A DNA stretch of 64,000 nt, from NCBI RefSeq assembly GCF_964204645.1, contig NC_134032.1:7862275-7926274 (forward strand). The letters are read 5' to 3'. The notes beneath the pieces were generated by a model. The model ran no database searches. It saw only the letters and a program-made list of their open reading frames with translations, and was not told where the DNA came from. The position numbers and the translations under genes are program-made. The stretch comes from Tubulanus polymorphus. Taxonomy: Eukaryota; Animalia; Nemertea. Below, piece by piece: positions 21,722 to 46,364 of this stretch (the first letter of the stretch is position 1; every line of letters starts with the position of its first letter).

Positions 21722-23626
21722 ATGCCGATTGACGTGCTTATTATGGGTCACTCCTTTGTGCATCGTCTCAGGACTTTCGAGCAGGAGCGCTTTTCCAATC
21801 TAGGCCTAGACCCAGACGTGGTAAAATTGCATTTTTTAGGTTTTGGAGGCGCTACAGTTTTACCGGGTGTAAAATCTATCCAACGGTGCCTGCCGAGTTT
21901 TGGTTCAAAATTTGACGTAGTATTCCTCCACTTAGGCGGAAACGATTTAGCCCGTTCAGACCCAAAAAGCTTGGCCTTTTCTTTGGTTGCATTGAGCAAT
22001 TTTCTGTGCAGCACGTACAGCGTGACACACTTATTAATTGGTCAGTCTCTGTTAGTATCATGCTTGATTTAAAAAAAGCATTTGACACTATTGATCATTC
22101 TATATTATTAGACAAGTTGTATAGTTACGGAATTCGAGGGGTTGCTCATTCATGGTTCAAATCCTACCTCACTAACCGCTTACAGCAAGTGTCGTTCAAG
22201 AACTATTTATCTGATGTCAGTCCCATTCCTATAGGGGTACCTCAGGGTTCCATCTTAGGGCCCTTGCTATTCATTTTGTTTGTTAATGACATCGTTTATT
22301 CTTGTAATTTAAACTTTTTACTATTTGCTGACGATACGACTGCCATTAACTCTCATTCCGATCTGAATATACTGCAATCAAATACTAATGTTGAGCTCAC
22401 TAAACTGTTTAACTGGCTAAACTCCAATAGGCTATCTGCTAATCTGTTGAAAACGAATCATATGCTTTTCCATAAAAAGATCAATATTCTTGATGATATC
22501 GACCTTGTAATGGGTAATGTTTCAATTGCTAGAAACAGAGAAACAAAATTCCTTGGTGTAATAATTGATGACAGCCTAACATGGAACTCCCACATAAACA
22601 AGCTGTGCTCTATTGTTAGCAGAAATATTGGTGTATTAAGAAAAGCACGACGTATTTTTCCTAGATCCGCGCTCATCAAGTTATTCAACGGTTTCATCCT
22701 TCCGTATCTACAGTACTGTAATATCGTCTGGGCATCTAATTATGTAACTAGGTTACGACCCCTTATTTTGCTTCAAAAACGCGCTATTCGCATTGCTAGT
22801 GGGGTAAATTTTTTAGAACACACTACTCCACTGTTCAAAAAGTCGTATCAACTCAAACTTCAAGACATCAATGTGTTCCAAAATTCTGTACTGATGTATA
22901 AATCTGTCCATGTGTTGCTGCCTGTCAAATTGTCCAATAGTTTAATTCGTATTTCTGATCTTCATTCCCACAACACCCGTAACTCTAATCAATTTCGTTT
23001 ACCTTATTACAGAACCAATATCAGGATGTTTTCTCCTAACATTAATTGTATTAGAGTCTGGAATTCTCTTCCAACTGAACTTCAGCAAGCATCCAACATA
23101 GATATATTCAAGCGGAATTTGAAAAGACATATAATAGGATTGTATTAATACTTATCATACTTGTGTTTAACATCATGTCCATCCATTCCGCCAGGGCATT
23201 AGGCTTTTTTTCATTAAAAGTATACCCCCCTTTGGGGTCCCTTTTTGTCCTTTTTCTTTACTACGCTTTACAGTGTAGAAGTACTTTCTGTAACTTTTCT
23301 TTCATGTAATAGTGATGACTGTATTTCTGTATTGTATCTCTTTAGTGAAGAAATAAACTTATTATTATTATATTATATTATTATAGTCGCTCAGGCGTCT
23401 GTCCCCTCCGACAAATTTCAATTCTAAGCTAATAGTATTCAACGAAACCGTGAAACGTTTAGTGTGTGAATCCTTAAATATAACTTTTTGGCAACACAGA
23501 GGTTTTTGGGCTGATATCCGGCCATTTCTTCTGAGAGATGGTGTACGTTTAAATGCAAAAGGCATGAAAAAATATGCTTTTAGTGTGAAGGCAGCTATTG
23601 GCCACGCCACTAAGAAATATTTCTAA
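21722..23626 (+). pseudogene. SGNH/GDSL hydrolase ORF of the Ngaro element, split by a LINE (halves 21722-22050 and ~23387-23626)
   Basis: Blocks MGHSFV, GFGGAT, LGGNDL before the insertion; FWQH...LRDGVRLN..GMKKY after it. Confidence 0.8.
22051..23384 (+). mobile_element. 5'-truncated LINE (CR1/L2-group-like RT ORF2)
   Basis: LDLKKAFDTIDH, GVPQGSILGPLLF, LFADD, KFLGV, W.SHI; open to stop at 23148; AATAAA plus (TTA/TAT)n tail; near-TSD agtctct / agtcgct. Confidence 0.9.
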
Positions 23627-23749
23627 TAGCTTGGTTTGAAGCAAGATACATCGTCTATTTGTCATCAATAAGTTATATGTGTTTCAATTTGATTATGAAT
23701 TTTACATATTCTTTTTACATATCTGACATGCATTTATGCAATTTTTAGT

Positions 23750-24235
23750 TACATGTGTTTTGGGGTTTTTACTTAAACGTACTCCCTGTTCTCAGGGGGT
23801 GGCATGTACTTTACCTATACATGTGTTTTGGGGTTTTTACTTCAACGTACTCCCTGTTCTCAGGGGGTGGCATGTACTTTACCTATACATGTGTTTTGGG
23901 GTTTTTACTTCAACGTACTCCCTGCTCTCAGGGGGTGGCATGTACTTTACCTATACATGTGTTTTGGGGGTTTTTACCTCAACGTACCCCCTGTTTTCAG
24001 GGGGTGGCATGTACTTTACCTATACATGTGTTTTGGGGTTTTTACCTCAACGTACCCCCTGTTTTCAGGGGGTGGCATGTAATTTACCTATACATGTGTT
24101 CTGGGGTTTTTTACCTCAACGTCCCCCTGTTCTCAGGAGGTGGCATGTATTCTATCGTTACATGTGTTTTGTGGCCCTCGCCGCAACCTACCCCTATTCT
24201 TTTCGGGGGTGGCATGTATTCTATAGATACATACT
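23750..24235. repeat. ~68-bp minisatellite, ~7 copies, inside Ngaro element
   Basis: Unit tacatgtgttttggggtttttacttcaacgtactccctgttctcagggggtggcatgtactttaccta. Confidence 0.92.
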
Positions 24236-24241
24236 TTAAAT

Positions 24242-24243
<2 letters not shown>

Positions 24244-24317
<74 letters not shown>
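24244..24317. repeat. (TA)n microsatellite
   Basis: Direct observation. Confidence 0.95.
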
Positions 24318-24319
<2 letters not shown>

Positions 24320-24492
24320 CATCTTTGTAACGTGTTTTTCTCTCAAAGGACGTTATGTTGTAAAAAACCCTTTGTTTGATAATTCATCGGAATCTTGCGG
24401 TTGTTTTTCATACTATTTCCATGATATACGCATTCGGCCAAGATGCTGTTCAATTTTCTGCTGGTTTTTTTTTCTATTTGCTAATTTTTTGG

Positions 24493-25502
24493 ATGCCGAG
24501 AGCCACGAGAGCTAAGCGTGCAGTCACCAGTAGACAAAAACGCCCTCGTTCGTCTGCGCTTACTGAAGCGGTTGCCACCCCCGTCAATGCCAGGGACCAA
24601 CCAACTAACCAAACCAACAACCAACAACCAACCAACAGCCAAACAACCAACAACCAGATGCGAATGCCGTCGCGGATATAGTCATTCAAAGACTCATCGA
24701 TAGTCATCTGCTACCAACACGCGACGCCACACAGAACTGCTTCCCGACTCCTGTAGTGAATTCTTCCAATCCTGGTGACGTCACACGGAACTTCTTTTCG
24801 ACACCTGTGGAGAATCCTCCCATTCCTGGTGAGCAACTTATCAGCGAGTTACTTACGTCCTCGCTTCCTTTGGACTTAGCAGTGTCGGAAAAAATAAAGT
24901 CCGATATTTGGGCAGATAGATATATTGATTTGTCGGCTCTTTTGATCGGTACTAAATCTGCCGAAGTTGACACACTTCGTGCTACCCTTTCTGAGAAAGG
25001 AGACTTAACATTGTGTAAACCTAGACGCAAACAGTTGTCATCCATTTACGAATGGAACAAAACATTCGATATCTTCATGTCTGTCTACGTGCAAAGACAT
25101 TCCGATGTTCAGGTTTTCCGTCAGCTGTTGAAATATGCTAGCACTATCCGTCAATTTGCTAACGATTTTGGTTTTCCCGCCGCAAAGAGCTACGATGAGC
25201 AATTCCGCCGATTCAGAGCGGTTTCTCCATCTCTGGCGTGGTCAAAAGTTCACGATGAACTCTGGCTACGGTGTAGTACTATAAGATCGGTAGATCAAAA
25301 GAAGCCCTTTCTTGCGAAGCCCCACCGACAGACAAAGCGTTTTCCGGTCGGTTTCTGCTGGAAATTCTGCCAGACTGGAACCTGCCAGTATAAGCTCTGT
25401 AGAAGAAAGCATGAATGCCCCCATTGCGGTAAAAAACATGCAGCCGACTCATGCACTGCCCAAAATTATTCCGACACCAATAAAACCACACAACTTAGAT
25501 AA
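24493..25502 (+). pseudogene. Ngaro gag-like ORF1, frameshifted within a (CAAC/CAA)n tract (~24596-24656)
   Basis: MPRATRAKR start; IKSDIWADRYIDLSALL, EWNKTFDIF, YDEQFR; C-terminal CWKFC...C..C...H.CPHCGKKH....C zinc knuckles. Confidence 0.8.
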
Positions 25503-27036
25503 TTTGCTAATTGGTTTCAAACAACGGAAGTTTCTGGTAGATGGTTTTACTTACGGGTTTCGTTTAGGATCAGCTACTCAAAGACCATATACTTTGGACA
25601 TCCCAAAGAATCACAAAAGTTTTTTAGATTGTCCTTCCATAGCGAAGGAAAAAATTCTGCATGAATTTGACCTAGGCCGTATTGCCGGTCCTTTCACCAC
25701 ACCTGTTCATAAAAATTATGTATGTAGCCCAATGGGTATAATAGCAAAAAAAGAATCTGGAAAATTTAGACTCATTCACGATCTGTCCTTTCCAGAGGGG
25801 TCCTCAGTAAACGACTTTGTAGAGGACGATCATAAAAAAGTGTCATATGACAACATCGAATCCGTTATTTCACTAGTTCAATTATATGGGCGCGGGTGCC
25901 TTATGGCCAAAGCAGATATTCAAGACGCCTTTCGTTTAATACCCGTCCATCCAGACGATTATCATTTGTTGATGTTTACTTATAACAATATGTATTACTA
26001 TGACCGTTGCCTGCCGATGGGTTGCGCATCATCCTGTCAATTATTTGAAGTATTCAGTTCAGCAATACAATGGATTCTATTGAATAAGAAAGACGTTCAG
26101 CATATCTCCCACCTATTAGACGACTTTTTCTTTATCGGGAGGCCCATTTCTAATCAGTGTAACTTAGCTTTGCACTCATTTTTCGAAATTTGTACAGAAA
26201 CCGGGATTCCCGTAAAACACGATAAGACTGTTCATCCCGGTACATGTTTAATAATATATGGTATTGAAATAGATTCAGACGCTATGGAAGCGCGTCTGCC
26301 ATTAGATAAAGTGGAAAAAATTCGTGCCCAATTGTTGGACAATAAGTGCAAAAAGTCGGTGACGCTCAAGGAACTACAGTCACTGCTAGGCCTGCTCAAT
26401 TTCGCTTGCAGCGTAATCATACCCGGTAGGGCGTTTCTACGGTGCCTCTGCGATCTGACTTGTGGAATATCCCGGCCACATCACAGAATTAGGCTAAATA
26501 ACGAAGCGAGATCTGATTTAACCGCGTGGTGGTCTTTCGTAAACCATTTTAATGGTAAATCATGTTTCTTATATTCATCGTGGACACCGTCTGACGCTAT
26601 TCGTTTGTATAGTGATGCTGCGGGATCGAAAGGTTTTGCAGCTGTTTTCGGTTCTCGTTGGTTCTCGGGTGGCTGGCAACATGATATGCTTGACCACCAC
26701 ATCACGATAAAAGAGTTCTTTCCCATAGTATTAGCGTTAGAAATATGGGGCGGTAACCTAAGAAACCATAAAATACTTTTTATGACCGACAACGCAGCTG
26801 TCGCACATATCATTAACAAAATGACCTCTACTGATAAGGTCATTATGCGTCTGGTCAGACGTTTGGTGCTGGCAGCAATGAAATATAATGTATTTATTCG
26901 GAGCGAGCATATTGCAGGGTACACTAATGTGATCAGTGACAAGTTGTCCCGTTTCTGTTTTCAGGAGGCCAGGCAGTATGCACCGTGGCTGAACAGACTG
27001 CCAACTCCTATACCACCGGCCAGCTACAGAATATAG
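25312..27036 (+). CDS. Ngaro reverse transcriptase-RNase H
   Basis: Open 574-aa frame overlapping gag; GKFRLIHDLS, KADIQDAFR, LPMGCASS, HLLDDFF; RNase H SDAAG, IKEFFPI, TDN, SDKLSR. Confidence 0.92.
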   Translation: MRSPTDRQSVFRSVSAGNSARLEPASISSVEESMNAPIAVKNMQPTHALPKIIPTPIKPHNLDNLLIGFKQRKFLVDGFTYGFRLGSATQRPYTLDIPKNHKSFLDCPSIAKEKILHEFDLGRIAGPFTTPVHKNYVCSPMGIIAKKESGKFRLIHDLSFPEGSSVNDFVEDDHKKVSYDNIESVISLVQLYGRGCLMAKADIQDAFRLIPVHPDDYHLLMFTYNNMYYYDRCLPMGCASSCQLFEVFSSAIQWILLNKKDVQHISHLLDDFFFIGRPISNQCNLALHSFFEICTETGIPVKHDKTVHPGTCLIIYGIEIDSDAMEARLPLDKVEKIRAQLLDNKCKKSVTLKELQSLLGLLNFACSVIIPGRAFLRCLCDLTCGISRPHHRIRLNNEARSDLTAWWSFVNHFNGKSCFLYSSWTPSDAIRLYSDAAGSKGFAAVFGSRWFSGGWQHDMLDHHITIKEFFPIVLALEIWGGNLRNHKILFMTDNAAVAHIINKMTSTDKVIMRLVRRLVLAAMKYNVFIRSEHIAGYTNVISDKLSRFCFQEARQYAPWLNRLPTPIPPASYRI

Positions 27037-27956: not shown

Positions 27957-30335
27957 TGACGCATTGACGCAATTTTAGATGCTAAAACTTTAATTTTGAG
28001 GGCCAGATTTTGTCTGCCTCACGTCGTTACCTTGTTTTTGTATTAAATAATGATTTTCCAAAGTAATTTGATAGCTTTGAGGAGGCCCAGACGTTAGTCT
28101 GCCTCCCTGTGCACGTATGTACTTAACTACGTATGTACACTTATATGTACATAACCCTTGTATATGTTAGTTTATATCTTATATATGACATCTTGTGCTT
28201 TAAATTTTAACGAATGATATTAGTTTCAATTTGAATTCATACGTTTTTTGGAGAGCCAGAATATTTCCCTGCCTACACGGGTTATTCAAAATCGTATCGT
28301 AACGTCTTACTCAAATACGGTTCATAATATTTGCTTGATCATAATGTTTGGTTGAGGGCCAGATGTTGTCTGCTTCACCATCCAATACTAAAACTCAATT
28401 ACACACGTATCATTCGTAAGAGGGCCAGATGTTGTCTGCCTCGTATGTCTATGTTACAGACTCACCCCTCTCTTGATATATGGAAACGACCTCGGTTTGG
28501 CCTGGATGTTTGTTTCAAACATCTTGTGGCGATTTTTTGGCCAAACTTTTCGCAAAATATATACATGTATGTTTCAATTTGCAACAATTTTGTAATAAAC
28601 TTAGTTTCACCAGTCATTTATACTAATAAATGACCTTTATCAATCAACTACATGTCTTGTTTATTTTGCTTCAAACAAAGCTCGTTGTTTTCCATTTCTC
28701 ACGGAGCGTGGATATCATAAATGAGTTTTATTTTTGTAGAGAATAAAATGTTTTGTGAGATCACGCGGAGTCACGTGTTACTTATCAGTTGTTAGTTACT
28801 CCTTGCCTCCGCCCCTCCTGACATCGTGGCTAAGCATTTCTTCGGAGAAACACGAGTAGGATACTTCGTTATTTTCACTGACTTCAATTCAATATCCCAC
28901 CCTTAATTCCCTCCCCTTTTCTTATGTGAAAATTTGTATACATTCGTATTGGGTGTATTTATTGTTGAATGTTGTCACATCATATGATTAATTATTTGGC
29001 GATTTTTTGGCCAAACTTTTCGCAAAATATATACATGTATGTTTCAATTTGCAACAATTTTGTAATAAACTTAGTTTCACCAGTCATTTATACTAATAAA
29101 TGACCTTTATCAATCAACTACATGTCTTGTTTATTTTGCTTCAAACAAAGCTCGTTGTTTTCCATTTCTCACGGAGCGTGGATATCATAAATGATATCCA
29201 GGGAGAAACACACTAGCTAATAGGATGTTATGGTTAGCGGTATAAGTCCCCTCGGTAAAAATCGCCATTTCTTCAAAGTAGGTGAAAATCCCCCTCCTGA
29301 ATGTAGTGTAAGTAGATACAATCTTAAGGTCAATTAATTCGTATAATTGATACATATAATAAATCCTCTCTGTCGCGTCTTTCCGTAATGGCACCTGCTA
29401 AAATCCAGACCTCATGTCAAGCTTCGAGAAAACCTGGGCACCGTGTAAACGCGAAAGAATATCATCGAGCTTTTTCATCGGATACGCATCCGATTTAGTT
29501 TTGACATTCAACTTTCGATAATCCACGCACATACGGAAGTTTCCGTTCGGTTTCGGCACCCATGGCGATTTCGACTCTTCTATCACGCCGTTGCGCAACA
29601 TTTCCGGAATTTGTTCCTCAGCGGCCTGACGTTTCGCAGGAGACAGATTGTACGGTTTCTGTCTAACTGGGGTGGTGTCATCTAAAACAATCTCGTGTTG
29701 TAAAACGCTCGTTCTACCCGGAGTATCACTTATAACGTCCGAAAATTCGCTCAAAATCGCTTCAACGGCCTCGCGGCGTTGAGCACTGCTGAACGGTTCA
29801 GCAACGCGCGAATCGACGACAGGTGGTTTATCGAACTCGACTTGTTGAGGACGACGGATCTCGGTGCCCAACAACGGCCATTTAACCACAGGATGTGATG
29901 TTGAGATCCAGTAATCTCCCGCAGCGAAATACACAATATACGGCTCTGTAGATGAAGTCTCGACCAATCAAAACCGGAGTCGACATCGACTCCACGACGA
30001 CACATTCCACACTCAGCGACAAGCCACAGCAGCCAATGTCTAGCATGACGATACCCGATGGCGAGAAGGTGGAACCTTCAAACCATTGCAGAATGGTCTC
30101 ATTACGTTTTACTGGCTGGACGCCACACAATTCGTCGGTTACTAACGTTACCGAAGCGACCGAATCGACCGATTAACGGCCGTGGATCGGAAAACGACCT
30201 GTCTGGAACAAACTCAGGTGCGTTCGCCCTTAACGACGACGGGCGATACCCCTGACGGTTACGAATTTCACCTCCTTACGACGTTTGTGCCCTAATTCAC
30301 CGCAATGGTAGCATATTCCCTATCACTTAACGAAA

Positions 30336-30852: not shown

Positions 30853-33473
30853 GCACGGATCGTTGTACGCACCGTTTCTCCCAGCTACCCTCGACGATCT
30901 CAATCTTTTGACTGTCTTTGCTCGAACTTCGTCTCGAACTTTTTCCCGTCGACCTCTTTCTCTTCGCGATGTAATTTCTTTTGAGTCGCGTAATCATCAG
31001 CGAACATAGCGAGTTCCAGCGCACTCAGTTCATCTGTGAAAGTTTCATCCGAAAAGTGTCGCCTCGAAGATTGGACAAAAACTGGTCGGAAACGAGTCTA
31101 TCCAGAATTCTAACATATTCCGAATTTCCCAGTAGCGAATCCGACGGCTTCAAACAGTATCTGGCATATTCTTCCAGTCGCGCGACGAAATCCACGAACG
31201 TTTCGGTGTGATTTTTCGTTTCCCTACGGAACTTCAGACGATACGCGGATGGTGTCAATCTGTATCTGACAAATATCGCATCTTTTACCGTTTTGCACAC
31301 CTTTGTATCGCCATCACTTAACGAAAAGTACGCCTGCTGCACCGGACCGGTCAGATACGGTTCTAACACACTCGTTAAATCGCTGGATGGAATTCCGTAC
31401 CTATTCGCTAAATTTTCAAAAACACGGAACCAGTGATGTATGTCATCATTCTCGGACAGTTTAGTCATTTCATTAATTTTAGCAGGAGAATCTCGAGGTC
31501 GGCTCCGACTATCCGAAATCAGTTTCTGTACAGTGTCCAAAAAGCTTCGTTATCCTCGCGACGAGTAACGGAAAAATGTTCCAGCAATCCTTTAAAACTC
31601 TTTTCAGTGTCGAGAAGAGGTGATGACGGTGTAACTGGAGGGGTGTATGGAGAAACGGGTGATTTTTACCACGACAAATTGACAATCAGTGGCGAAAAAA
31701 GCTAATTTTTGGAAAAAGTAAACGATTTTTTAAAAGCTACCCATATTTATTTTATATCATCGCTTCGCAAATTTTTCAAATAAAATGATGGTAACGACAA
31801 AATTCTGATTTTACTTATGATATTTTAATGATAACCGTTAGAAGATGTTAGGCTTCAGGACCCGGTTCCACAGTTGTTGATTAACTTTTAACTCAGAGTT
31901 AAATTCCCTAACTCAGAGGTAAAAGTAACTCACAGTTAAGTCCGGTTCCACAGTTGTGTGTTAAATTTAACTCTAGAGTCAAATTCCTTAACTCAGGGTG
32001 AAATTCTAACTCTGGGTCAGACCTGAATTAAAATGCTTAACTCAGAGTTTAAAATGGCGGCATTCTACTTATTAGCGAGTAGAGAAGCCAAGAATAAAGA
32101 ATATCGAAGGATTACAAATCAACTGGAAATCACGGATGTTGAATGCTATAATAGATATCGCTTTACAAGAGCGGGTGTGCAGAGAATCGTTGAAATATGT
32201 AAGTAATAGGGGTTTAGTTGTTCTATACCAAAGGTCGAACGGTCGAGCTCGTAAAAAATGAAAAACATAAAAATAATAACAATTTCTACTTGAATTACTC
32301 GCGAAACTTATAAAAAATGAAAAATAATTCTCACACACTCGAATTTATTTTTCATTTTTACTCGCTAGAAAAAGTGTGAGTAAAGTGTGAGTGAAATAAA
32401 TTCGAGCGTGTGAGAGTAATTTTTCATTTTTTATGAGTTTCACTCCTAATTCAAGTAGAAATTGTTATTATTTTCATATTTTTCATTTTTTAATGAACAC
32501 GACCATTCAACTTTAACCTGAAAGCCCATTACCCCTATTACTCTTAAAATATTCATATACATGAATAAAATATATATGAATAACATATAAATTGATAGAT
32601 TATTCAATATAAAAGTGTGAGTGAAATAATTCATATTTAAAACATTGAATATTTATATTTGAATGAGTTTTAATAAAAGTTTTGTTATAAAAATGAAGAA
32701 AGAAGAAGAAGAACCCAACTTTAAAATCGAAATCAATGAAACCAATAAATCATTTTCACAGTCTTAAATTAAAAATTATATTTCAGCAACAAATTTAGTG
32801 TCCGCAAGGTATTATAAAATCGATAATATTACTATGATTAATCAAATATTATCAAATGAAACATATTTAATTATTGAACTAGTAGATACTTTTGATAATG
32901 GCGTTAAAAATCCTAAATTGTTCAATACAGTTTTTAATTTTAAAGGAACTTTAGATGAAAACATAATTAATATTATATTATATGAATAAAAAAACAATAA
33001 GTTAAATAAGTTAGTATTAGATAAAGTAACTTATTGTTTTTTTATTTAAATCTATTTGATTTTTATTCGCGCTATTGGTTAACAAGAATTGACTAGAATT
33101 CAAATAGATTTAACAAGAAATTCAATAACTTTAACTGTTAGTATCACTCGTGTATTATTTCATTGTTTCTCTTATTGAATAAGCCAACTAACTAATATCA
33201 CTCTTGTATTATCCTAGTCAAATGTAAAGAATTTACAATATCATACTTGAATGAATTAAAACATAAATTACTTCTTTTACTTCATTTTCAGAAATAAAGC
33301 ATAATATGTATTTGATACCATTAATACGTATTAAATACCATTAATACGTATTTGATACGTATTTAATACATATTTAATACATTGATACCTCAACCCTCCT
33401 TTTTTAACGTAAATATAATTTACTTATTTTCATACATTTCAACTAATATATTTTATATTTTCAGCGATTTCTT

Positions 33474-33774
33474 ATTTTGAATCATATAATTTTTCATCAA
33501 GTTCATGAATATATTTATGAGTTTTTAAACTCTTTAAATTTTTATATCTTTTATTGCATATTTCACAGCATTTAATATTATTCAATCTATCTGAAATATA
33601 ATTCATATTTTCTATTTATTCAGTGTATCTAATTTTACAGCAATCATAGAATTCTAACAACTTTTTTATACTATAAATTGAAAAAGAAAATAAACCTGTA
33701 AGCATAATAATTGATTTAATATTCTGTTGATTTTTATATATTAGATGTAATAAGTTTAATATATTTTCACTCAT
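33474..33774 (-). pseudogene. Small hydrophobic plus C2H2 zinc-finger ORF with internal TAA
   Basis: MSENILNLLHLIY...IRYTE*IENMNY...CEICNKRYKNLKSLKTHKYIH; homolog at 43528-43830 (+). Confidence 0.5.
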
Positions 33775-33794
33775 TTATTTATTTAATTAATTCA

Positions 33795-33992
33795 CTAATC
33801 TGATTCAATAACTTTTTTATGATTATTTTTATTTCCATTTAATTTTTTCAATTTCTTGCTCAATTTTATATTTTCATTCATCAAATCCATACTAATATTC
33901 TCATAGTATAAATGAAGCGCAGCCAATATTAATCCTCCTGCTACAAGATAATGTTTCAAATCACTTTTCCCAGTTGGGATGAAACCATCCAT
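33795..33992 (-). CDS. 65-aa single-pass membrane-like protein with basic tail
   Basis: Hydrophobic YLVAGGLILAALHLYY then K/N-rich tail; TAAATG start context. Confidence 0.45.
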   Translation of the reverse strand: MDGFIPTGKSDLKHYLVAGGLILAALHLYYENISMDLMNENIKLSKKLKKLNGNKNNHKKVIESD

Positions 33993-34049
33993 TTATTTAA
34001 GAAAGAAATTAAACAGTTTATAAAATATTAAATATTTATATGTTTCAAT

Positions 34050-36324
34050 TCAAATAACAATTAAACTTACTACTAATTCTTTATGCCGCTGAGAATTATA
34101 TTTTTGCTTGTGCGTAATCAATTTTATCACCTGATATTCTGTTATATTATTCTTAATTATTTCTTTATCGAAAAATTCATTTGATATGTAAATATTTTCA
34201 TCATTATGAATTAAAATTAGATGGCGCAATTTATTTCTAAAATATCTAGGATTAATGAAATCAATATTATATTCAGAATTATCTTTCAATAGTTCTAAAC
34301 GCTCGCATTGCTTAATTTTCATCATATTGTTAAGTTTCATTTTTCTTAAATAATCAGATTCTTTACGTATATCACATACATTTATGAAATCATTAGAATT
34401 TATCTTTAAATATTCAGTATATTTTTTCATCAATTCAAAATCCATTTTATCAATTATTTCAAAATGATCGTGTGTTATCTTCTTTACTTGGAAAATAGGT
34501 TTTTCTAATTTTGATAAAATAAAGTGTCTATCAGGGCTATGAACGCCTATTTTTAACTTTTTGATGATTTTTTCTATCGAAGACAATTCAAAATAATTAT
34601 TATTTAATACGTCTAATTGTAATGTTTTTATCAATAATTCTCTTAAACCTGTAGTAGTTTCATAAAAGCCTTGATCTGTTAAAATATAACTGAAATAAAG
34701 ATCTGTTATACATTTACATTGAGTTGAAAAACCTCTAATTTCAAAAATTGTATTATTGTCAATTCCAGATATTTTAGGAGTATAATCATTTAATTTCACT
34801 TCAGGAATTATTTCAAGTTTTTTAAATTCTGTCTCAAATAATTCATTATCAATATCTAATTGTTGCTTTAATTCATTACAAATTTTGTTTCTATTTTCAT
34901 CTATATCTTCTTGTAATTGTTTAAGTTCTTTCATCTCTTCTAACTTTTTAAATTCACTTTTAGATAATAATTTTAAATCAAAATCTTCTTCAATATCAAG
35001 TGCATCTAATTTATAAAAAGGTTTAGATTTTATATTGTATCTCTTTTTTAAAGTTGTAAAACTAATTCCTGTTTCACGTAATTTAAATCTAAATATAAAT
35101 TTATTCAATACTGTAAACATTGAATTAGTTGAAGATATAACAGTTGCTCCTTCAGTTTTAATATATTTTTTTGCTTCAATAATGAATTCTGATTTATCAT
35201 CATTTTGATCAATTGTTAGGTATAAACATGGGATATTCTTAATTGTAAACATTGATAAAATAAGTAAAAAGGAGGACTCTTCAATATTTTTACTTATCCT
35301 AGATTTATATCCTATAAATTTCCTTGCTAATAAATCACCATAATAACAGAAATAAAAGCATTTTTCAATCAAATCATAAATACATACAGTCTGTTGAACC
35401 TCATCAAATAATGATTTAAGTTGTAAATATGTAGGTGAATAGTAAATATTTTCTTTTTTTAAGTATTGTTTTATTTTTTCCATCACTTTTAATCCTCTTT
35501 TAAATGAAATACTTGTTATTTCAATTCTAATCAATCCTGTTTCAATTGATTTTTCAAATGATTCTTTTATTTTTCTAGCAATTTATGTAACTCATTAAAT
35601 TTGAACCGAAATTTATATTTACACCAGGAGATTTGAATTGACATGCTGTTTTATTATAGATCTTTATTTTATCATCCTTATGTAATGCTGAAACACAACT
35701 ATTGGAAAATTCTTTTAGAACTTTATATTTTATATTTTCGAACATTGATTTTATTTCATCTGAATTAAATGATCCTTTAAAATCTTGTGTCACATCTACA
35801 TCTAATATATTGTAATTTTTTTCATTTAATAATTTTTCAATATTATCTATTTTCTGTATTAATTCATTTAAATTTTGATTGCATAATGAAATTTTAAATA
35901 CAGCAATATAATCTGTTAATTTTAATTCTTGATTAATTCTACTTAATATATATGATTTTGAATTATCATCATGAATTGTTAAAACACGTGTAATTTTTAT
36001 AGCTAAGTTATCCAATATAATATCTCCTTGATTAAAACATTCTTTAATTTCATAATGTGTTATCTTTCTCTGATTAACGTTTAGAAAAGTTGTTCTATTT
36101 TCTTTAATAATTTCTTTTTCTAACATGATTTTATATAGCATTATATTATCGCAAAATATATCTGATGTTTCAATTAATTCATTATTTTCAGATTTATAAT
36201 ACTTATTTATATTTACTCCTGAAATATCTGCTAAATTATTGTTAACAGTTAAATAATATAATATTGAATTTATATATTTATTACTCATGTCTTTCGCGGG
36301 AACTTTAATTAATCTTGTGCACAT
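34050..36324 (-). pseudogene. Main protein of AT-rich element (~760 aa when the 249- and 494-aa ORFs are joined across a frameshift near 35575); candidate Rep_trans-like nickase
   Basis: DVDVTQD (~35782-35802), KIKIYNK (~35650-35670), GLIRIEIT (~35514-35537); the downstream frame is already open upstream of its annotated start (ARKIKESFEKSIETGLIRIE). Confidence 0.5.
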
Positions 36325-36394
36325 TTATATATCAAATTTTTATTAAAATAGGTTAAAATTCAAAAAGAGTTAGAGTTCGCTGAAACCTTACGCT

Positions 36395-36622
36395 TTAAAA
36401 TATTTTTTTACCCTTATTGGATTTATGTGATTTTAAATATTTACCTCCGCAATAACAATGCACTTTTTCATTAGGATTGAATTTTCTAAATTCATCATCT
36501 AAATTACATTGAACTGCAATATCTTTATATGATTTTTCATTATCTAATTCACATTGAATTCCAATATTTGATGAATTTTCATTGTAGATAATTTGTTTAT
36601 TATCAAAATTGAAATAATACAA
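36395..36622 (-). CDS. 75-aa hypothetical protein, partial zinc finger (HCYCGGKY) and two GIQC/AVQC motifs
   Basis: ORF track; tightly packed with neighbours. Confidence 0.4.
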   Translation of the reverse strand: MYYFNFDNKQIIYNENSSNIGIQCELDNEKSYKDIAVQCNLDDEFRKFNPNEKVHCYCGGKYLKSHKSNKGKKIF

Positions 36623-36625
36623 TTG

Positions 36626-37006
36626 TCAAATCAAATCATTGTAATCTTTTGAAAGTATTATATCATCATTTCTTTCATTGAAAGGAGTTTTAAGAATATT
36701 AATTATGTTTTCATCTAAAGTTCCTTTAAAATTAAAAACTGTATTGAACAATTTAGGATTTTTAACGCCATTATCAAAAGTATCTACTAGTTCAATAATT
36801 AAATATGTTTCATTTGATAATATTTGATTAATCATAGTAATATTATCGATTTTATAATGTCTTGCGGACACTAAATTTGTTGCTGAAATATAATTTTTAA
36901 TGTCAAACTGTGAAAATGATTTATTGGTTTCATTGATTTCGATTTTAAAGTTGGGTTCTTCTTCTTCTTTCTTCATTTTTATAACAAAACTTTTATTAAA
37001 ACTCAT
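36626..37006 (-). CDS. 126-aa hypothetical protein beginning inside the right TIR
   Basis: ATG ORF; a broken mirror copy lies in the left TIR (32663-32989). Confidence 0.5.
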   Translation of the reverse strand: MSFNKSFVIKMKKEEEEPNFKIEINETNKSFSQFDIKNYISATNLVSARHYKIDNITMINQILSNETYLIIELVDTFDNGVKNPKLFNTVFNFKGTLDENIINILKTPFNERNDDIILSKDYNDLI

Positions 37007-38024
37007 TCAAATATAAATATTCAATGTTTTAAATATGAATTATTTCACTCACACTTTTATATTGAATAATCTATCAATTTATATGTTATTCATATATATT
37101 TTATTCATGTATATGAATATTTTAAGAGTAATAGGGGTAATGGGCTTTCAGGTTAAAGTTGAATGGTCGTGTTCATTAAAAAATGAACTCATAAAAAATG
37201 AAAAATTATTCTCACACGCTCGAATTTATTTCACTCACACTTTACTCACACTTTTTTCTAGCGAGTAAAAATGAAAAATAAATTCGAGTGTGTGAGAATT
37301 ATTTTTCATTTTTTATAAGTTTCGCGAGTAATTCAAGTAGAAATTGTTATTATTTTTATGTTTTTCATTTTTTACGAGCTCGACCGTTCGACCTTTGGTA
37401 TAGAACAACTAAACCCCTATTACTTATGTAGACCATTGATGGCAGAAAAAACGTGCAATCGTGGATTGCCTTTGACTGTCGAACTGCAAGTTCCTATGGC
37501 ACCTCGATTTTATGCCAGTGGCTCATTTTAGGAGGTAATCGGAGATAGTTTTGGTGTATCGAAATCAACAGTTTCGAGATCCGTTACTCGTGTGACCGAC
37601 GCACTTCACCGATACGAAGAAAGCAGATTTTATCAAGTTTCCGAGAGACCCAGCAGAACTGGCAAAAACGAAATCTGATTTTTATGAAGTCGGAAATTTC
37701 CCCGGTGTTATTGCTTGTGTTGATGGAACACATATACGTATCTAAGTACCATCTAAGTAATTTGTCTGAAACAAATGCAAACCCCTCTCTTAGAGAGATT
37801 CTCACTGGTGAGAATAAAAAAATTTAACTTGCCAGTACGGTGCCGGCCCTTGATCCTTGTTTGTGATGTATCATTATTCCCATAAAAACATAAAAAGTTC
37901 CCTGCCTCTATCCATCATTGCACGCAGGACCGTTTACAGAGTCGAAATGAAGCAATCTAGCGTAGGTTCTGGGCCAAATGCTCATGGATATATATATATA
38001 TATATATCAATATTCTAATTATCA

Positions 38025-38382
38025 GAGGGAGGGAGGGAGGGAGGGAGGGAGGGAGGGAGGGAGGGAGGGACGGACGGACGGACGGAGGGAGGGAGGGAGG
38101 GAGGTAAGGGAGGGAGGGAGGGAGGGAGGGAGGGAGGGAGGGAGGGAGGGAGGGAGGGAGGGAGGGAGGGAGGGAGGGAGGGAGGGAGGGAGGGAGGGAG
38201 GGAGGGAGGGAGGGAGGGAGGGAGGGAGGGAGGGAGGGAGGGAGGGAGGGAGGGAGGGAGGGAGGGAGGGAGGGAGGGAGGGAGGGAGGGAGGGAGGGAG
38301 GGAGGGAGGGAGGGAGGGAGGGAGGGAGGGAGGGAGGGAGGGAGGGAGGGAGGGAGGGAGGGAGGGAGGGAGGGAGGGAGGG
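38025..38382. repeat. (GGGA)n microsatellite, ~350 bp
   Basis: Direct observation. Confidence 0.97.
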
Positions 38383-38650
38383 ATCTATACTGTAGCAAAA
38401 GCTGAATGAGAAAATATTCATGATTTTACAAATATCAAGCTTTCATATTTCATACAGTTCCCGAGTGGAGTTCGATAACTATAGGATAGGCCTTTATACC
38501 TCGGGGTGTGACGAAATATACCAGCGCCTTACAGTCGTCTGACAAATTACTACCTGCTACTGAAACTGGGTGCGTATTGACACTGGGAAGTTAAGGCGGA
38601 TGATTTTTCAGAGAGACGAGTTGAATTGGGCGTGAGAAGCCGCTAGACGA

Positions 38651-39751
38651 ATGATGAGCTATTCAAACACTTCGACCGTTCTGTCAACTACTGTTACTAC
38701 CACCACAAAACCAGTCTATCATGATATTTGCGATTTTGCTCAGGGTGAAATGCCGATCCGTTGGAATCATGAATTCAGCGTTTATATGTACATTTTCTTC
38801 TACGGTCCCGTCACTATATTGGGCATCACTTTGAATGTCATAACGATTTTAGTCTTGAAAAAGATGAACAAAGATGTTTACTATTTACTCAAAGTTCTCG
38901 CTATTTTCGACATATGTTATTCATCGAGTGTGTTCGTCATGTACCCTCTACGCACAATTCACCTCTATATACATTTACGGGATGTCATTTTGCGTTATGA
39001 TGACTGGCTGTTTGGCTGGGAATTTATACAAATTGCGATAGGACCGTTTTATATGTTTCAACAGACCAGAAACTGGTGCGTTATTCTTGTCAGTTTAGAA
39101 AGACTAGTAATTACAATTTTCCCGTTAAAATCGAGATTGTTTTGGACGCGAAAAGTAGTGAATTGTATAATAATATTGATAAATGTTTATGGTATTTGTT
39201 TTTACCTGCCATTGTTTTTGCCGGATCGAGTTCTCGAACCTATGCGTTGTTTTCATAGACATACTACTCTTTGGCGAGGCGGCTATTTCGCTTACTACGG
39301 CCCGTTCGTTGTTTGGAAGAAGGAGGCAGAAGGCTGGATGGGGACTGCATCAAGTGTCATCGCTCCTATGATCGCACTGCTTGTCGTAAACATCATTTTA
39401 ATTTTTGCTTTGATTGTGATCAAATTTTCACGAATTGGTAAAAGTCGTTCAGCAATAAAGAATCAAACTTCCAACACGTTAGAGTTACGCGCATTGAGAA
39501 TGTCGTTTGCTCTTGTTGCTGTTTTCGTCACATTCGAATCGTTGATATTTATCGAAAGGTTGCAGTGGGCTGGGTTTGGAATAATTTATCTTCCCATTGG
39601 TAATCTCACTGGTGATGAGGTTCTTATGGTTAGGCGAAAAATAGGTATAGGTTTAACTGTAGTTGATTCATGTATGAACTTTTTAGTCTATTGTTTGTCT
39701 AACAGTAAATTCAGAGTCGCTGTTGTTCAACTGATGAAGCGGAAAGTGTAA
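38651..39751 (+). CDS. Single-exon rhodopsin-class GPCR (FMRFamide-receptor/srw-like expanded family)
   Basis: 366 aa, seven hydrophobic segments; GITLN (TM1), LAIFD (TM2), RNWCVILVSLERL...FPL (TM3, DRY variant), DSCMNFLVYCLSNSKFR (TM7/H8); N-terminal NTS glycosylation site. Confidence 0.88.
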   Translation: MMSYSNTSTVLSTTVTTTTKPVYHDICDFAQGEMPIRWNHEFSVYMYIFFYGPVTILGITLNVITILVLKKMNKDVYYLLKVLAIFDICYSSSVFVMYPLRTIHLYIHLRDVILRYDDWLFGWEFIQIAIGPFYMFQQTRNWCVILVSLERLVITIFPLKSRLFWTRKVVNCIIILINVYGICFYLPLFLPDRVLEPMRCFHRHTTLWRGGYFAYYGPFVVWKKEAEGWMGTASSVIAPMIALLVVNIILIFALIVIKFSRIGKSRSAIKNQTSNTLELRALRMSFALVAVFVTFESLIFIERLQWAGFGIIYLPIGNLTGDEVLMVRRKIGIGLTVVDSCMNFLVYCLSNSKFRVAVVQLMKRKV

Positions 39752-44206: not shown

Positions 44207-46246
44207 TGTAAGACGAATATGTGATGGACCGGTAAAGTCCGGTATCCGGCTTTTACCGAGTCCAAATCCATATTTTAGTGACCCCGTATTGTGTGGGGAT
44301 TCTTTTGTTCTCTTTTGGCGTGGTAATAAAAGAAGGAAGACGTTAGGTAAATCTCGGCGTGGTCTTAGATTAATTTAGAGGTTCTGTGGAAACGATTATT
44401 CCCCCTTTCTTGATTGAGCCAACGAAAAAGGAGATTTCACAAATGGTGGCAGCGTACTGGGATTTTTAGAACCTTAAAACTGTGGAAATATTGAACGTAT
44501 AGTCTGTGTAAATTCTCTCACGGAGAGACGGAAAGTTATCGGTTTATATACGGCAACTGAGATTAATCTGGTGTCGGTTATTAGTTTGCTACTGTCTGTT
44601 GAGTTAACCTCCAGTGTTTTTACCTCAGATTGCAGACCCTAACCCACCTTTAATACAGCCAGCAATTATCAGTGTAGGCCTAAATTAAATGTATATATTT
44701 ATTTATCACTTCTCCAATAACGTCGGCTAATGGACAGGATCTTCACCTAAGAGGGATAGAGATAGTACGGCTTACATTAAGGGATCGTGACTTTGATATC
44801 TCCATGGTTATTGTAGATGATATTACTCAAGATTGTCTACTTGGTAGTGATTTCTTTGAGTCCTTTGAGTCCTTCAACTGCAAGATTGATTTTGAATTAA
44901 AGGAGCTTACTTTTGGCACGGCTAGCATTCCACTTCGAAATCAAGAGAGTAAGGCCAGATGCTGCAGGATTTTCGCCAGTAAAACCTTGTGTATCCCGGC
45001 GGGAACAGAGATAGTCACTAGTGGTATAATGAGACGTAAACTCGTGGGTAATAACTCGTCTTCAGGTACCATTGAGAACTTAAAATTATCGGGTCTGATG
45101 GCTGCCAAAGTAGTAGCAACGACATCGAAGAATCGCACACTGGTGCGACTAGCAGATTATACCGATTCACCACAGTGGATAAAAAGGGGCCAACCCATCG
45201 CCTGGTTTAGTCCAATTGAATCCCTGACCTTATCCCTGATTAATGAGGGCGAAAAGAGTGACCAGGACCGTTTAGTCTCACAGGGACCGATCCCTGAAGA
45301 AAAGGTCCAGTCCGTGCTAGATGACTTGCAGATTGCGGACATGGGGATTCCGGAGGAGGCCAAAAAGGAATTGACCAGTGCAATCCGGAGCAACATTGAT
45401 GTGTTCTCGACAGGTGATTTCGATCTGGGGCGCACTAGCCTATTAGAACACGAAATTGACACCCAGGATACTCGTCCGATTAAGCAAAACCCTCGTCGAA
45501 TACCACATCATCGACAAAAATTTGTGTAGGACACGACTGATCAACTTCTAGAACGGGGTTTGATACGTGAGTCACATGGAGCTTGGTCAAGCCCGATAGT
45601 CCTCGCAAAGAAAGCAGATGGCTCACTTAGATTCTGTGTGGACTACCGTAAACTTAATGAGGCCACGGTCAAAGATGCCCATCCATTACCGAGGGTTGAC
45701 TCGACGCTTGAGACTCTTGCGGGATCAACGAGGTTTTCGTCACTCGATCTTGCAAGTGGATACTGGCAGATGCCCGTGAGTGAGGCAGATAAAGCGAAAA
45801 CGGCCTTCGCTACAGAAAGGGGCTTATTCGAATGGAACGTCATGCCATCTAGTTTATACGTCCATGGGCTAACCAATGCACCTGCGTCGTTTTCACGGCT
45901 GGTGGCTCTGGTTTTGGACCCCGTGGCAAGGAAAACTTGTTTAGTGTATCTGGACGATGTTATTGTTTTCAGCCCTGACTTGGGAAGTCATCTTAATCGT
46001 TTTTTCGAAGTTTTTGCCTGTTTCCGAGCAGCTAACTTGAAGCTGAAACCCAAGAAGTGCCACTTGTTTCGGAGGATACTGAAATTCCTAGGTCATATAG
46101 TTAGCGGGGCTGGAATCCACACTGATCCGGAGAAAGTACAGCGAGTGATTGATTGGCCGGCCCCCTCCAACTTATCTGAACTTAGGAGTTTCATTGGACT
46201 CGTCGCATATTACTCTCGCTTCATTGAAGATTATGCATCGAATGCT
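44207..46246 (+). mobile_element. Truncated Gypsy LTR retrotransposon (5' LTR ~44207-44441, PBS TGGTGGCAGCG, protease end, RT)
   Basis: TG...CA LTR with AATAAA; CLLGSDF, DLGRTSLLEHEIDT, RFCVDYRKLN, SLDLASGYWQ, YLDDV, FLGHIV; stop at 45527-45529; gag largely absent. Confidence 0.87.
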
Positions 46247-46364
46247 TAAAGTTTTGATTTAAGCCTCATAATTGCAATGCGAAATTAAGCAGACACTTTT
46301 TTTCGTAAAACTGCTGCAGCTTAGCCCCAAGCAAGATGTCACATCAAACATGGGGTTTGTGCAA

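Follow-up and report, generated by a model that had tools for sequence, protein, structure and literature searches.

Organization of an AT-rich element in Tubulanus polymorphus

We analysed a window of 64 000 nucleotides from the nemertean Tubulanus polymorphus (NC_134032.1, positions 7,862,275 to 7,926,274; positions below are those within the window). It contains an AT-rich mobile element of 5223 bp, of about 20% GC in DNA of about 40% GC, with all genes on the minus strand. The following features were found.

32202..37424 (-), whole element
32196..32201, left copy of the candidate target-site duplication (TSD), TATGTA
37425..37430, right copy of the candidate TSD, TATGTA
32200..32974 (+), left terminal inverted repeat (TIR) of about 775 bp, terminus AGTAATAGGGG...
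36695..37426 (-), right TIR, lacking about 44 nt of the inboard palindrome arm that the left TIR has
32230..32516, terminal palindrome of the left end (arms 32252-32350 and 32394-32492), candidate origin and nick-site hairpin or cruciform
37185..37381, shorter palindrome of the right end
36395..37006 (-), upstream ORF of 126 aa that continues in frame past one TGA into 75 more residues and starts inside the right TIR
35575..36324 (-), Rep_trans-like gene, first piece (249 aa), carrying D59 (36150-36148), D177 (35796-35794), D181 (35784-35782), K221 (35664-35662), Y223 (35658-35656) and K225 (35652-35650)
35575..35580 (-), site of the reading-frame break, between the Cys codon and the following Arg codon and next to an A5 run
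34050..35570 (-), Rep_trans-like gene, second piece (506 aa), carrying GLIRIEIT (Arg 35528-35526, Glu 35522-35520), the rest of the predicted TBP-fold domain and a C-terminal half of about 320 aa that ends in the family's ...VSLI tail
33795..33992 (-), 65-aa protein with one hydrophobic segment, conserved downstream of the Rep-like gene in the related locus L001 (E 5e-8)
33472..33606 (-), 44-aa ORF with a C2H2-type zinc finger (zf-C2H2_6, E 2e-4, below the Pfam cut-off)

The TIRs are 99–100% complementary. When folded as single-stranded DNA, the left terminal palindrome (~290 nt) reaches −86.5 kcal/mol (z −17.8), and 0 of 100 shuffled sequences folded as well. The duplication may be the 6 bp TATGTA, but it could equally be TG (32198-32199) with element ends TA..TA, as both give the same empty site. 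With the element and one copy removed, the flanks read ...RIVEIC/RPLMAEK... in frame. The element is inserted in a Harbinger-type gene remnant, and both flanks are ordinary TE-rich animal-type DNA. Apart from the zinc finger, no known domain was recognized in the ORFs of the element, which include no helicase, polymerase or integrase.

The two large ORFs are one broken gene

The original prediction was that the 249- and 494-aa ORFs, which abut in different frames, carry a triad of short motifs once joined. This observation is confirmed. The ORFs at 36324..35575 (249 aa) and 35534..34050 (494 aa from a TTG; the frame is open from 35570, giving 506 aa) lie in frames one base apart. The first ends ...SYINC + TAG (35580-35575), while the second frame already reads (A)RKIKESFEKSIETGLIRIEITS from 35579. 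The motifs DVDVTQD (35802-35782), KIKIYNK (35670-35650, with the Tyr codon at 35658-35656) and GLIRIEIT (35537-35514) together span exactly 35514-35802.

Whether homologues are consistently encoded as two ORFs had been set beforehand as a test of the prediction, and they are not. The natural relatives P0002 (427 aa) and P0003/L002 read ...FGSNLFNYINCHQKRLKNSFENSIEEGLIRIEVTS... in one frame, and dozens of relatives are single ORFs of 800–950 aa. The ORFs therefore represent one gene of about 755 residues and not two genes. The break lies next to an A5 run, so that an assembly error cannot be excluded. Programmed frameshifting was rejected because relatives have no break at this point, and a reading of TGA as Trp (genetic code 4) was rejected because the long ORFs are open under code 11.

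A family with near-invariant motifs

The two pieces were searched separately, without being joined across the break. Pfam, PHROGs and PDB-sequence searches of both pieces, of the close relatives and of 134 family members gave no meaningful hit. Neither the pieces nor the relatives P0001–P0003 matched Pfam Rep_trans (PF02486), and 0 of 134 members gave any hit to it at E ≤ 10. HMMER likewise found nothing. A word-based search with the 506-aa piece, a tblastn search of this piece against plasmids and of RepC against phages, a search for related loci in metagenome and IMG/VR contigs, and a search for the TIR terminus in metagenome contigs were all negative. Exact look-up of the 249-aa ORF and of the neighbouring GPCR ORF returned no record. 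The C-terminal half has no Pfam or PDB-sequence relative.

An exhaustive profile search, however, identified 276 relatives (clusters at 50% identity, a lower bound for the family), 113 of them at E ≤ 1e-10. They are of varied composition, are mostly single ORFs of 550–950 aa and have no known domain. Their most conserved positions are F-x-D, D-x-D-x-T-x-D, R-x-K-x-Y-N-K and G-x-T-R-x-E. The near-invariant columns are FxD (D 100%), K (94%), DxD(98%)xT(91%)xD(98%), R(86%)xK(98%)xY(100%)N(94%)K(99%) and G(99%)xxR(98%)xE(97%), indicating that the three motifs are more than a chance occurrence.

One relative is an annotated nuclear gene in Planococcus citri, a lone ORF inside an intron of a NAPRTase gene. 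Locus L002 also has flanks of normal GC content, but most relatives are on short contigs without recognizable host flanks. The largest gene is the only one conserved across the loci of the family. In the relatives L011–L014, an IR-flanked end segment occurs in both orientations, as hairpin transfer would produce, and tandem repeats occur in relatives.

Predicted fold and comparison with Rep_trans proteins

The natural protein P0002 served for structure prediction. A first AlphaFold2 run with 7 sequences was unusable (pLDDT 40.6), whereas the model based on 134 family sequences reached pLDDT 93.7 and pTM 0.92. In this model all of the conserved residues lie on beta strands. The Tyr is on strand 199–205, and the three acidic residues (Asp of FxD, Asp of DxD and Glu of RxE) are on three different strands (44–55, 152–164 and 247–254).

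Foldseek against PDB placed TBP and RepDE (4cwc/4cwe) in the top four (E 1.4e-3 to 2.8e-3, probability 0.84–0.98). Against BFVD, 15 hits at E ≤ 1e-3 were obtained, with viral TBPs and inovirus Rep proteins at E 2e-5 to 1e-3. They include 'Replication-associated protein G2P [Inoviridae]' (E 7.2e-5, probability 0.99) and A0A345MNV4, which is named as a PF02486 inovirus initiator (PMC13107129). The TM-scores are low (0.19–0.28), and non-catalytic TBPs score as well as Rep proteins, so the fold match alone does not show a nickase.

For the sequence comparison, a word-based search with RepC returned only near-identical staphylococcal proteins, and Rep_trans diversity was obtained instead from contigs of bacterial and archaeal genomes. 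With a narrow Rep_trans alignment, hhalign paired the wrong, pseudo-symmetric strands. Against 25 non-redundant Rep_trans sequences the score was 26–31.5 (P 0.013–0.003), while the reversed control scored 11.6 and 0 of 40 block-shuffled controls reached the real score. The hhalign probability is only 0.3–3.5%, and no sequence profile method reaches significance. The alignment is nevertheless colinear over 278 columns. It pairs the FxD Asp with D46, DxTxD with D142-A144-D146, K-x-Y-N-K with R189-Y191-K193, and R-x-E with R212-E214. Of nine Rep_trans residues compared (the strictly conserved motif residues plus metal ligand D46, catalytic Y191, R189 and K193), eight pair with family invariants: the metal ligands D46, D142 and E214, the catalytic Y191, and R189, K193, D146 and R212. 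Those residues are the experimentally defined active site of Rep_trans (PMC4797284; PMC5714925). In the family, the basic residues flanking the Tyr are Lys at −2 (98%) and Lys at +2 (99%).

Other Rep_trans features are not kept. The position of R140, the Arg of motif I (RxD), is Asp (69%), Ser or Glu. Motif II (T/SxY/ExG) is not recognizable, and the family has VGxNCLT where it is expected. The Glu of motif III (YxKxxE) is not in register, as the family reads Y-N-K-F-V-x-x-x-E/T-S without a Glu at +5.

The original interpretation, a eukaryotic Rep_trans-like nicking enzyme of about 760 aa, is thus supported in part, by predicted structure rather than by sequence. It holds that there is one gene of about 755 aa split by a frame change, that it resides in a eukaryotic genome, that the three motifs are the invariant core of the family, that the Tyr of KIKIYNK aligns with the catalytic Y191 of RepC/RepD, and that the predicted fold is TBP-like as in Rep_trans. 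The remark that this fold had not been described among animal transposases agrees with the literature searched, which does not describe such an enzyme in eukaryotes; PMC13107129 states that Rep_trans is restricted to bacteria and adds an archaeal sister family. However, the protein is not a member of Pfam Rep_trans and is at best a new, very distant family of the same superfamily, and a role as transposase is not shown. It may be a replication initiator of an episome-like element, and the insertion may have been made by another enzyme.

A putative tyrosine nickase for replication from terminal palindromes

We consider it more likely than not that the element is a young insertion whose main gene encodes a tyrosine nickase that starts rolling-circle or rolling-hairpin replication at the terminal palindromes. 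In this view, the N-terminal ~330–430 aa form a TBP-like double beta-alpha domain of the Rep_trans superfamily, in which D59, D177 and the Glu of R-I-E would hold Mg2+/Mn2+. Y223 would attack a phosphodiester in one DNA strand and stay linked to the 5' end, and K221 and K225 would take the roles of R189 and K193 in rejoining. The nick would be made at a hairpin or cruciform extruded from the terminal palindromes and would prime copying of the element by host polymerases. The C-terminal half probably supplies recognition of the element's own ends. The single gene, its family, the predicted fold, the conserved residues, the TIRs, the palindrome and the insertion are established by our analysis, while catalysis, the nick site, the replication mode and the enzyme responsible for the insertion are inferences. 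Rep_trans and HUH rolling-circle elements are not known to make TIRs plus TSDs, so that the insertion is not explained by this enzyme.

It is possible, although doubtful, that the insertion was made in trans by a DDE/RVE-type integrase and that the element is a small satellite-like replicon, comparable to a transpoviron, which the Rep-like protein only replicates. The candidate 6-bp TSD, the 5'-AG...CT-3' ends and the long TIRs recall Polinton/Maverick elements, and the AT-richness, TIRs, one large protein, small membrane protein, zinc-finger proteins and tandem repeats in relatives resemble transpovirons (PMC7031253). On the other hand, the TSD length is ambiguous between 2 and 6 bp, no Polinton or giant-virus gene was seen in the window, and no relatives were found in IMG/VR. 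Transpovirons encode an SF1 helicase (PMC5499653), which was not detected in any ORF of the element or in the C-terminal half. Classical transpoviron or Polinton identity was rejected, as the core genes, which in Polintons include those for an RVE integrase and a protein-primed polymerase, are absent.

It is less likely that the Tyr enzyme is itself the transposase, cutting and rejoining the element ends in the way of a tyrosine-HUH transposase or a telomere resolvase, instead of serving as a replication initiator. The clean TIR ends with a duplication, the lack of any other recognizable enzyme in the element and the conservation of only the largest gene across loci would fit. However, single-strand tyrosine nickases of the HUH and Rep_trans kinds are not known to make TSDs, most relatives lack recognizable host flanks, and the flip-flop end in L011–L014 points to replication.

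A non-catalytic TBP-like DNA-binding factor, for example in transcription or packaging, with a coincidental or convergent motif match, is unlikely. TBP and viral VETF-L/TBP proteins do score as well as Rep proteins in Foldseek and the sequence statistics are weak, but a 100% conserved Tyr flanked by invariant Lys residues plus three carboxylates of about 98–100% conservation on separate strands is an active-site pattern and not a DNA-saddle pattern, and eight of the nine Rep_trans residues pair in one colinear alignment.

Bacterial, phage or organelle DNA, by contamination or recent transfer, is very improbable despite the 20% GC, the compact intronless ORFs and the otherwise prokaryotic distribution of Rep_trans, given the TIRs and duplication inside a gene remnant whose frame continues across the empty site, the animal-type flanks, the P. 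citri gene and the flanks of L002, although the prokaryotic genomes were scanned for Rep_trans rather than for this family and absence from prokaryotes is not implied.

Two unrelated enzyme folds are known to start rolling-circle replication. HUH enzymes occur in all domains of life, while Rep_trans was thought to be bacterial and was extended to archaea in 2026 by structure alone (PMC13107129). A family with the predicted Rep_trans fold and active-site residues, with a young transposon-like copy in one animal genome and a lone ORF in the P. citri chromosome, would extend this enzyme class to eukaryotic mobile DNA. It would also define a new kind of eukaryotic element and give a handle on thousands of unannotated AT-rich 5–9 kb metagenome contigs. 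A more far-reaching and tentative reading, which we regard as less likely than not, is that these are a previously unrecognized class of eukaryotic selfish replicons, possibly small viruses or virus satellites that can endogenize in animal genomes. They would be linear, 5–9 kb, with hairpin-forming inverted ends, and would be copied by rolling-hairpin or rolling-circle synthesis started by a non-HUH, TBP-fold tyrosine nickase. This would put the Rep_trans superfamily in all three domains of life, as a eukaryotic counterpart to parvovirus-type replication built on an unrelated enzyme.

Relation to other initiators and elements

Rep_trans (PF02486) rolling-circle initiators and MOBT relaxases (RepC/RepD of pT181/pC221, RepSTK1, RstA of CTXphi, NicK, Orf20 of Tn916) share with the present family the TBP-like fold, here predicted, a Tyr on a beta strand in [RK]-x-Y-N-K, catalytic in Rep_trans, and an N-terminal Asp, a D-x-[AT]-x-D strand and an R-x-E strand in the same order. 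A hairpin- or cruciform-forming inverted repeat is available as substrate. Apart from the lack of significant sequence similarity and the motif differences given above, the present protein is two to three times longer, with its C-terminal half in place of the small DNA-binding domain, the host is eukaryotic, and the element is linear-looking with TIRs and not a small circle.

Rep-Arvir (DUF7845) of archaeal pleolipoviruses and plasmids (PMC13107129) is also joined to Rep_trans only by structure, with Foldseek hits to the same viral TBP and inovirus Rep entries, a conserved Tyr and a hairpin origin. The Tyr context differs, being KHYYM there and Y-N-K here, the latter identical to pT181-type Rep. 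Rep-Arvir has a central wHTH domain and archaeal hosts, and no member of the present family hits DUF7845.

Parvovirus NS1/Rep and Helitron/Replitron RepHel would, by our hypothesis, follow the same logic of a Tyr nickase acting at terminal hairpins of a ~5-kb eukaryotic element (rolling hairpin) or at transposon ends. Their fold is unrelated (HUH/RRM-like, with the Tyr on a helix), and they have a fused SF3 or Pif1 helicase, which is absent here.

In transpovirons of giant viruses, the large protein is an SF1 helicase fused to an inactivated polymerase, neither of which is detectable here, and the present copy is in an animal chromosome. What is shared is the length of 5–9 kb, the AT-richness, TIRs of several hundred bp, one large protein plus small membrane and zinc-finger proteins, and internal tandem repeats in some relatives.

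One gene interrupted by a frame change

On the minus strand, an ATG-started ORF of 249 aa is followed by a second open frame, which is listed as 494 aa from a TTG but is open from further upstream, giving 506 aa. The two frames are one base apart. The first ends ...FGSNLMSYINC-TAG, while the second already reads (A)RKIKESFEKSIETGLIRIEITS... from 35579. The three motifs of the original prediction were found exactly where it had placed them, and its observation is confirmed. The relevant positions are:

36324..35575, minus strand, first piece of the gene (249 aa)
35534..34050, minus strand, second piece as listed from the TTG (494 aa); open from 35570 (506 aa)
35802-35782, minus strand, motif DVDVTQD
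35670-35650, minus strand, motif KIKIYNK, with the Tyr codon at 35658-35656
35537-35514, minus strand, motif GLIRIEIT
35575-35580, site of the frame break, next to an A5 run

The break interrupts a single gene. A search with the 249-aa piece identified three metagenome proteins which are 51-53% identical. Two of these, P0002 (427 aa) and P0003, run through the junction in one frame (...FGSNLFNYINCHQKRLKNSFENSIEEGLIRIEVTS...). The second piece continues to the native C-terminus of the family (...VSLI). The break may be a mutation or an assembly error, but it is not a conserved programmed shift, because it is absent from the relatives. The two pieces were searched separately, and a natural uninterrupted relative was used for prediction of the fold.

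The gene resides in an AT-rich element with inverted ends

The gene lies in an island of 20% GC within DNA of about 40% GC. The island is bounded by inverted repeats which are 99-100% complementary, indicating a recent insertion. Their termini read AGTAATAGGGG... and occur only at these two places in the window. The sequence TATGTA flanks both ends. As TA is palindromic, the duplication could equally be TG with element ends TA...TA, and both readings give the same empty site. With the element removed, the flanks read ...YRFTRAGVQRIVEIC|RPLMAEKTCNRG...EVIGDSFGVSKSTVSR... in one frame. The right flank hits HTH_Tnp_4 (E 4.5e-5). The element therefore sits in a decayed Harbinger/PIF-type transposase gene, which carries its own in-frame stop. 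The boundaries and the surrounding features are:

32200-32974, left inverted repeat
36695-37426, right inverted repeat
32196-32201 and 37425-37430, the two TATGTA copies
32033-32199 and 37427-37700, plus strand, the Harbinger/PIF-type transposase gene split by the element, with its in-frame stop at 37529-37531
37990-38420, a long (GGGA)n / GGGAGGGA microsatellite of about 400 bp just right of the Harbinger remnant, creating spurious ORFs of 127-154 aa on both strands
38651-39751, plus strand, an intronless 366-aa ORF with a weak rhodopsin-family 7TM match (7tm_1 E 2.7e-4, below the cut-off) and no exact product on record
22006-27036, 29398-29967, 45560-46249 and 53092-54387, several retroelement ORFs (RVT_1, RVT_thumb, and DUF1759 of the BEL/Pao type)

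The remainder of the window is thus TE-rich animal-type DNA.

Each end of the element carries a palindrome. The left 320 nt fold as single-stranded DNA into a hairpin of ~290 nt that starts about 28 nt from the terminus (-86.5 kcal/mol, z -17.8). The right end has lost about 44 nt of one arm.

Four other ORFs are present in the element, all on the minus strand. A 126-aa ORF starts in the right inverted repeat and continues in frame past a single TGA into 75 more residues (together 36395-37006, minus strand); the left inverted repeat holds a damaged second copy of its first part (32798-32989, plus strand). The others are a 65-aa single-pass membrane protein, conserved in the related locus L001, a 52-aa ORF, and a 44-aa ORF with a C2H2 finger. 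Domain searches assigned no known function to any of them.

A family of 276 relatives with a near-invariant core

A word-based search with the 506-aa piece found nothing. An exhaustive HMMER profile search of 1.84 billion representatives, however, revealed 276 relatives at E<=1e-3, 113 of them at E<=1e-10. Most are 550-950 aa long, and their composition ranges from very AT-biased to GC-rich. Many are single long ORFs (for example P0036). Consistent encoding of the homologues as two ORFs, which had been named beforehand as a result that would speak against the prediction, was thus not observed. None of the relatives has a Pfam domain.

The near-invariant columns are F-x-D (Asp 100%); one Lys (94%); D-x-D(98%)-x-T(91%)-x-D(98%); R(86%)-x-K(98%)-x-Y(100%)-N(94%)-K(99%); G(93%); and G(99%)-x-x-R(98%)-x-E(97%)-x-T, plus W, T and G further on. 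The motifs of the original prediction are thus the conserved core of a real family, and the window copy keeps all of them. In the L003 and L002 lineage of relatives, the C-terminal module (...G-x-I-x-E-V-x-G-F... then ...F-x-x-x-K...) is duplicated and is followed by a Q/M-rich low-complexity tail (L003 2886-3734).

Relation to Rep_trans: sequence and predicted structure

Sequence methods did not detect a relation to Rep_trans. Pfam gave no hit from any of 134 members, even at E<=10, profile searches against PDB sequences gave nothing, and neither did the family HMM against Rep_trans proteins.

Structure prediction, in contrast, indicates the same fold. An AlphaFold2 model of the natural protein P0002, computed with 134 family sequences, reached pLDDT 93.7 and pTM 0.92, while a run with 7 sequences had failed. 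Foldseek against the PDB placed TBP (1tbp, 2z8u) and the Rep_trans initiator RepDE (4cwc_A, 4cwe_A; E 2.6-2.8e-3, probability 0.84-0.90) in the first four positions. Foldseek against BFVD gave 15 hits at E<=1e-3, among which are 'Replication-associated protein G2P [Inoviridae sp.]' (E 7.2e-5, probability 0.99), viral TBPs and several unnamed A0A345M/N entries. One of those, A0A345MNV4, is named as an inovirus initiator with PF02486 (PMC13107129). As the TM-scores are low (0.19-0.28), this is evidence at the level of the fold only. The Rep_trans catalytic domain has been described by Carr et al. (PMC4797284), and its fold is stated to be the TBP fold (PMC13107129).

We then constructed a Rep_trans alignment from pT181 RepC (locus L004, protein P0155), plasmid Reps and 79 loci from bacterial genomes, of which 25 sequences remained after removal of redundancy. 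In hhalign, the family scores 26.2 against this alignment (P 0.013), or 31.5 (P 0.003) with a different match-state rule, although the probability is only 3.5%. The reversed control scores 11.6, and none of 40 block-shuffled controls reaches the real score. The alignment is colinear over 278 columns. It pairs F-x-D of the family with S-F-D46, the conserved Lys strand with R-I-E-F-N-P-N-K, D-x-T-x-D with D142-A144-D146, K-x-Y-N-K with R189-I-Y191-N-K193, and T-R-x-E with W-R212-V-E214. In the Rep_trans enzyme, D46, D142 and E214 bind the metal, Y191 is the nucleophile, and R189 and K193 are needed for rejoining (Carr et al., PMC4797284). The family counterparts lie on strands 44-55, 152-164, 199-205 and 247-254 of the model.

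Of the five published motifs (PMC5714925), N' (Asp) and motif IV ([WL]xRxE) are kept. In motif I (RxD) the Asp is kept but the Arg is not, motif II is not recognizable, and in motif III (YxKxxE) YxK is kept but the Glu is not. We consider it probable that this is a new, very distant family of the Rep_trans superfamily; it is not a member of Pfam Rep_trans. The interpretation as a Rep_trans-like enzyme is thus supported in part, namely for the predicted fold and active site, whereas Pfam membership is not supported and a role as transposase is unproven.

Proposed mode of action

By analogy with pT181-type initiators, the enzyme would nick one strand at a hairpin or cruciform extruded from an inverted repeat and would stay attached through the Tyr, and the 3'-OH would then prime strand-displacement synthesis. 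The interrupted gene, its family with the conserved residues, and the inverted repeats and palindromes, which offer such a substrate at each end, come from the analysis itself; nicking, attachment and priming are inferred. We hold the explanation as a whole with moderate confidence, less firmly than the relation to the Rep_trans superfamily alone.

Relatives give a hint of hairpin-end replication. The same element of 7.3-8.9 kb was assembled from four independent samples (L011-L014), with a constant gene order (371 aa, ~200 aa, the 931-aa Rep-like protein, 257 aa, 177 aa, 175 aa). Each contig ends in a 132-140-nt inverted repeat whose 595-nt spacer occurs in both orientations. In L011 (7996-8854), L012 (6997-7795) and L013 (6866-7740), the 595-nt segment encodes the 175-aa ORF and is flanked by perfect inverted repeats of 102-140 nt. 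This is what flip/flop hairpin transfer produces, but a site-specific inversion of the segment is an alternative explanation. In distant relatives, tandem repeat arrays with units of 11 nt, 28-31 nt and 67 nt lie upstream of the Rep-like gene (L015 472-892; L016 1-370 and 1282-1669). These recall iterons or the central repeats of transpovirons.

The element encodes no helicase or polymerase, so that host or helper functions would be needed. The C-terminal half of about 320-400 aa has no detectable relatives and may, as a guess, recognize the ends. The insertion itself, with inverted repeats and a duplication, is not what single-strand nickases are known to produce. It may be the work of another integrase, and a 6-bp duplication with AG termini would recall Polintons/Mavericks. 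Alternatively, it may reflect an unknown activity of this protein.

Distribution

Most relatives are located on metagenome contigs of 3-9 kb from ENA, JGI and Logan. One is an annotated nuclear gene of the mealybug Planococcus citri (XP_065207965 and isoforms; L097 11077-13836, OX465510.1). It is a single 919-aa ORF without recognizable inverted repeats, annotated as part of a spliced gene with three isoforms, inside an intron of a NAPRTase gene, and may be a domesticated or fossil copy. L002 is another AT-rich island with flanks of normal GC content. No relatives were found in IMG/VR.

Comparison with known systems

Full-text searches found no description of a Rep_trans-type enzyme in eukaryotic elements, and the Rep_trans family is stated to be one that 'appears to be restricted to bacteria' (PMC13107129). 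What is new here is a distant family with the predicted fold and active-site residues of Rep_trans. The elements may represent a new class of eukaryotic replicon, although this reading is tentative. The closest known enzymes are the Rep_trans initiators and MOBT relaxases, and the archaeal Rep-Arvir family, which was linked to Rep_trans in 2026 by the same kind of structural evidence. By architecture, the closest known elements are transpovirons (7 kb, AT-rich, with TIRs, membrane and zinc-finger proteins; PMC7031253), which carry an SF1 helicase instead (PMC5499653). By the proposed logic, the closest elements are parvoviruses and Helitrons, which use the unrelated HUH fold.
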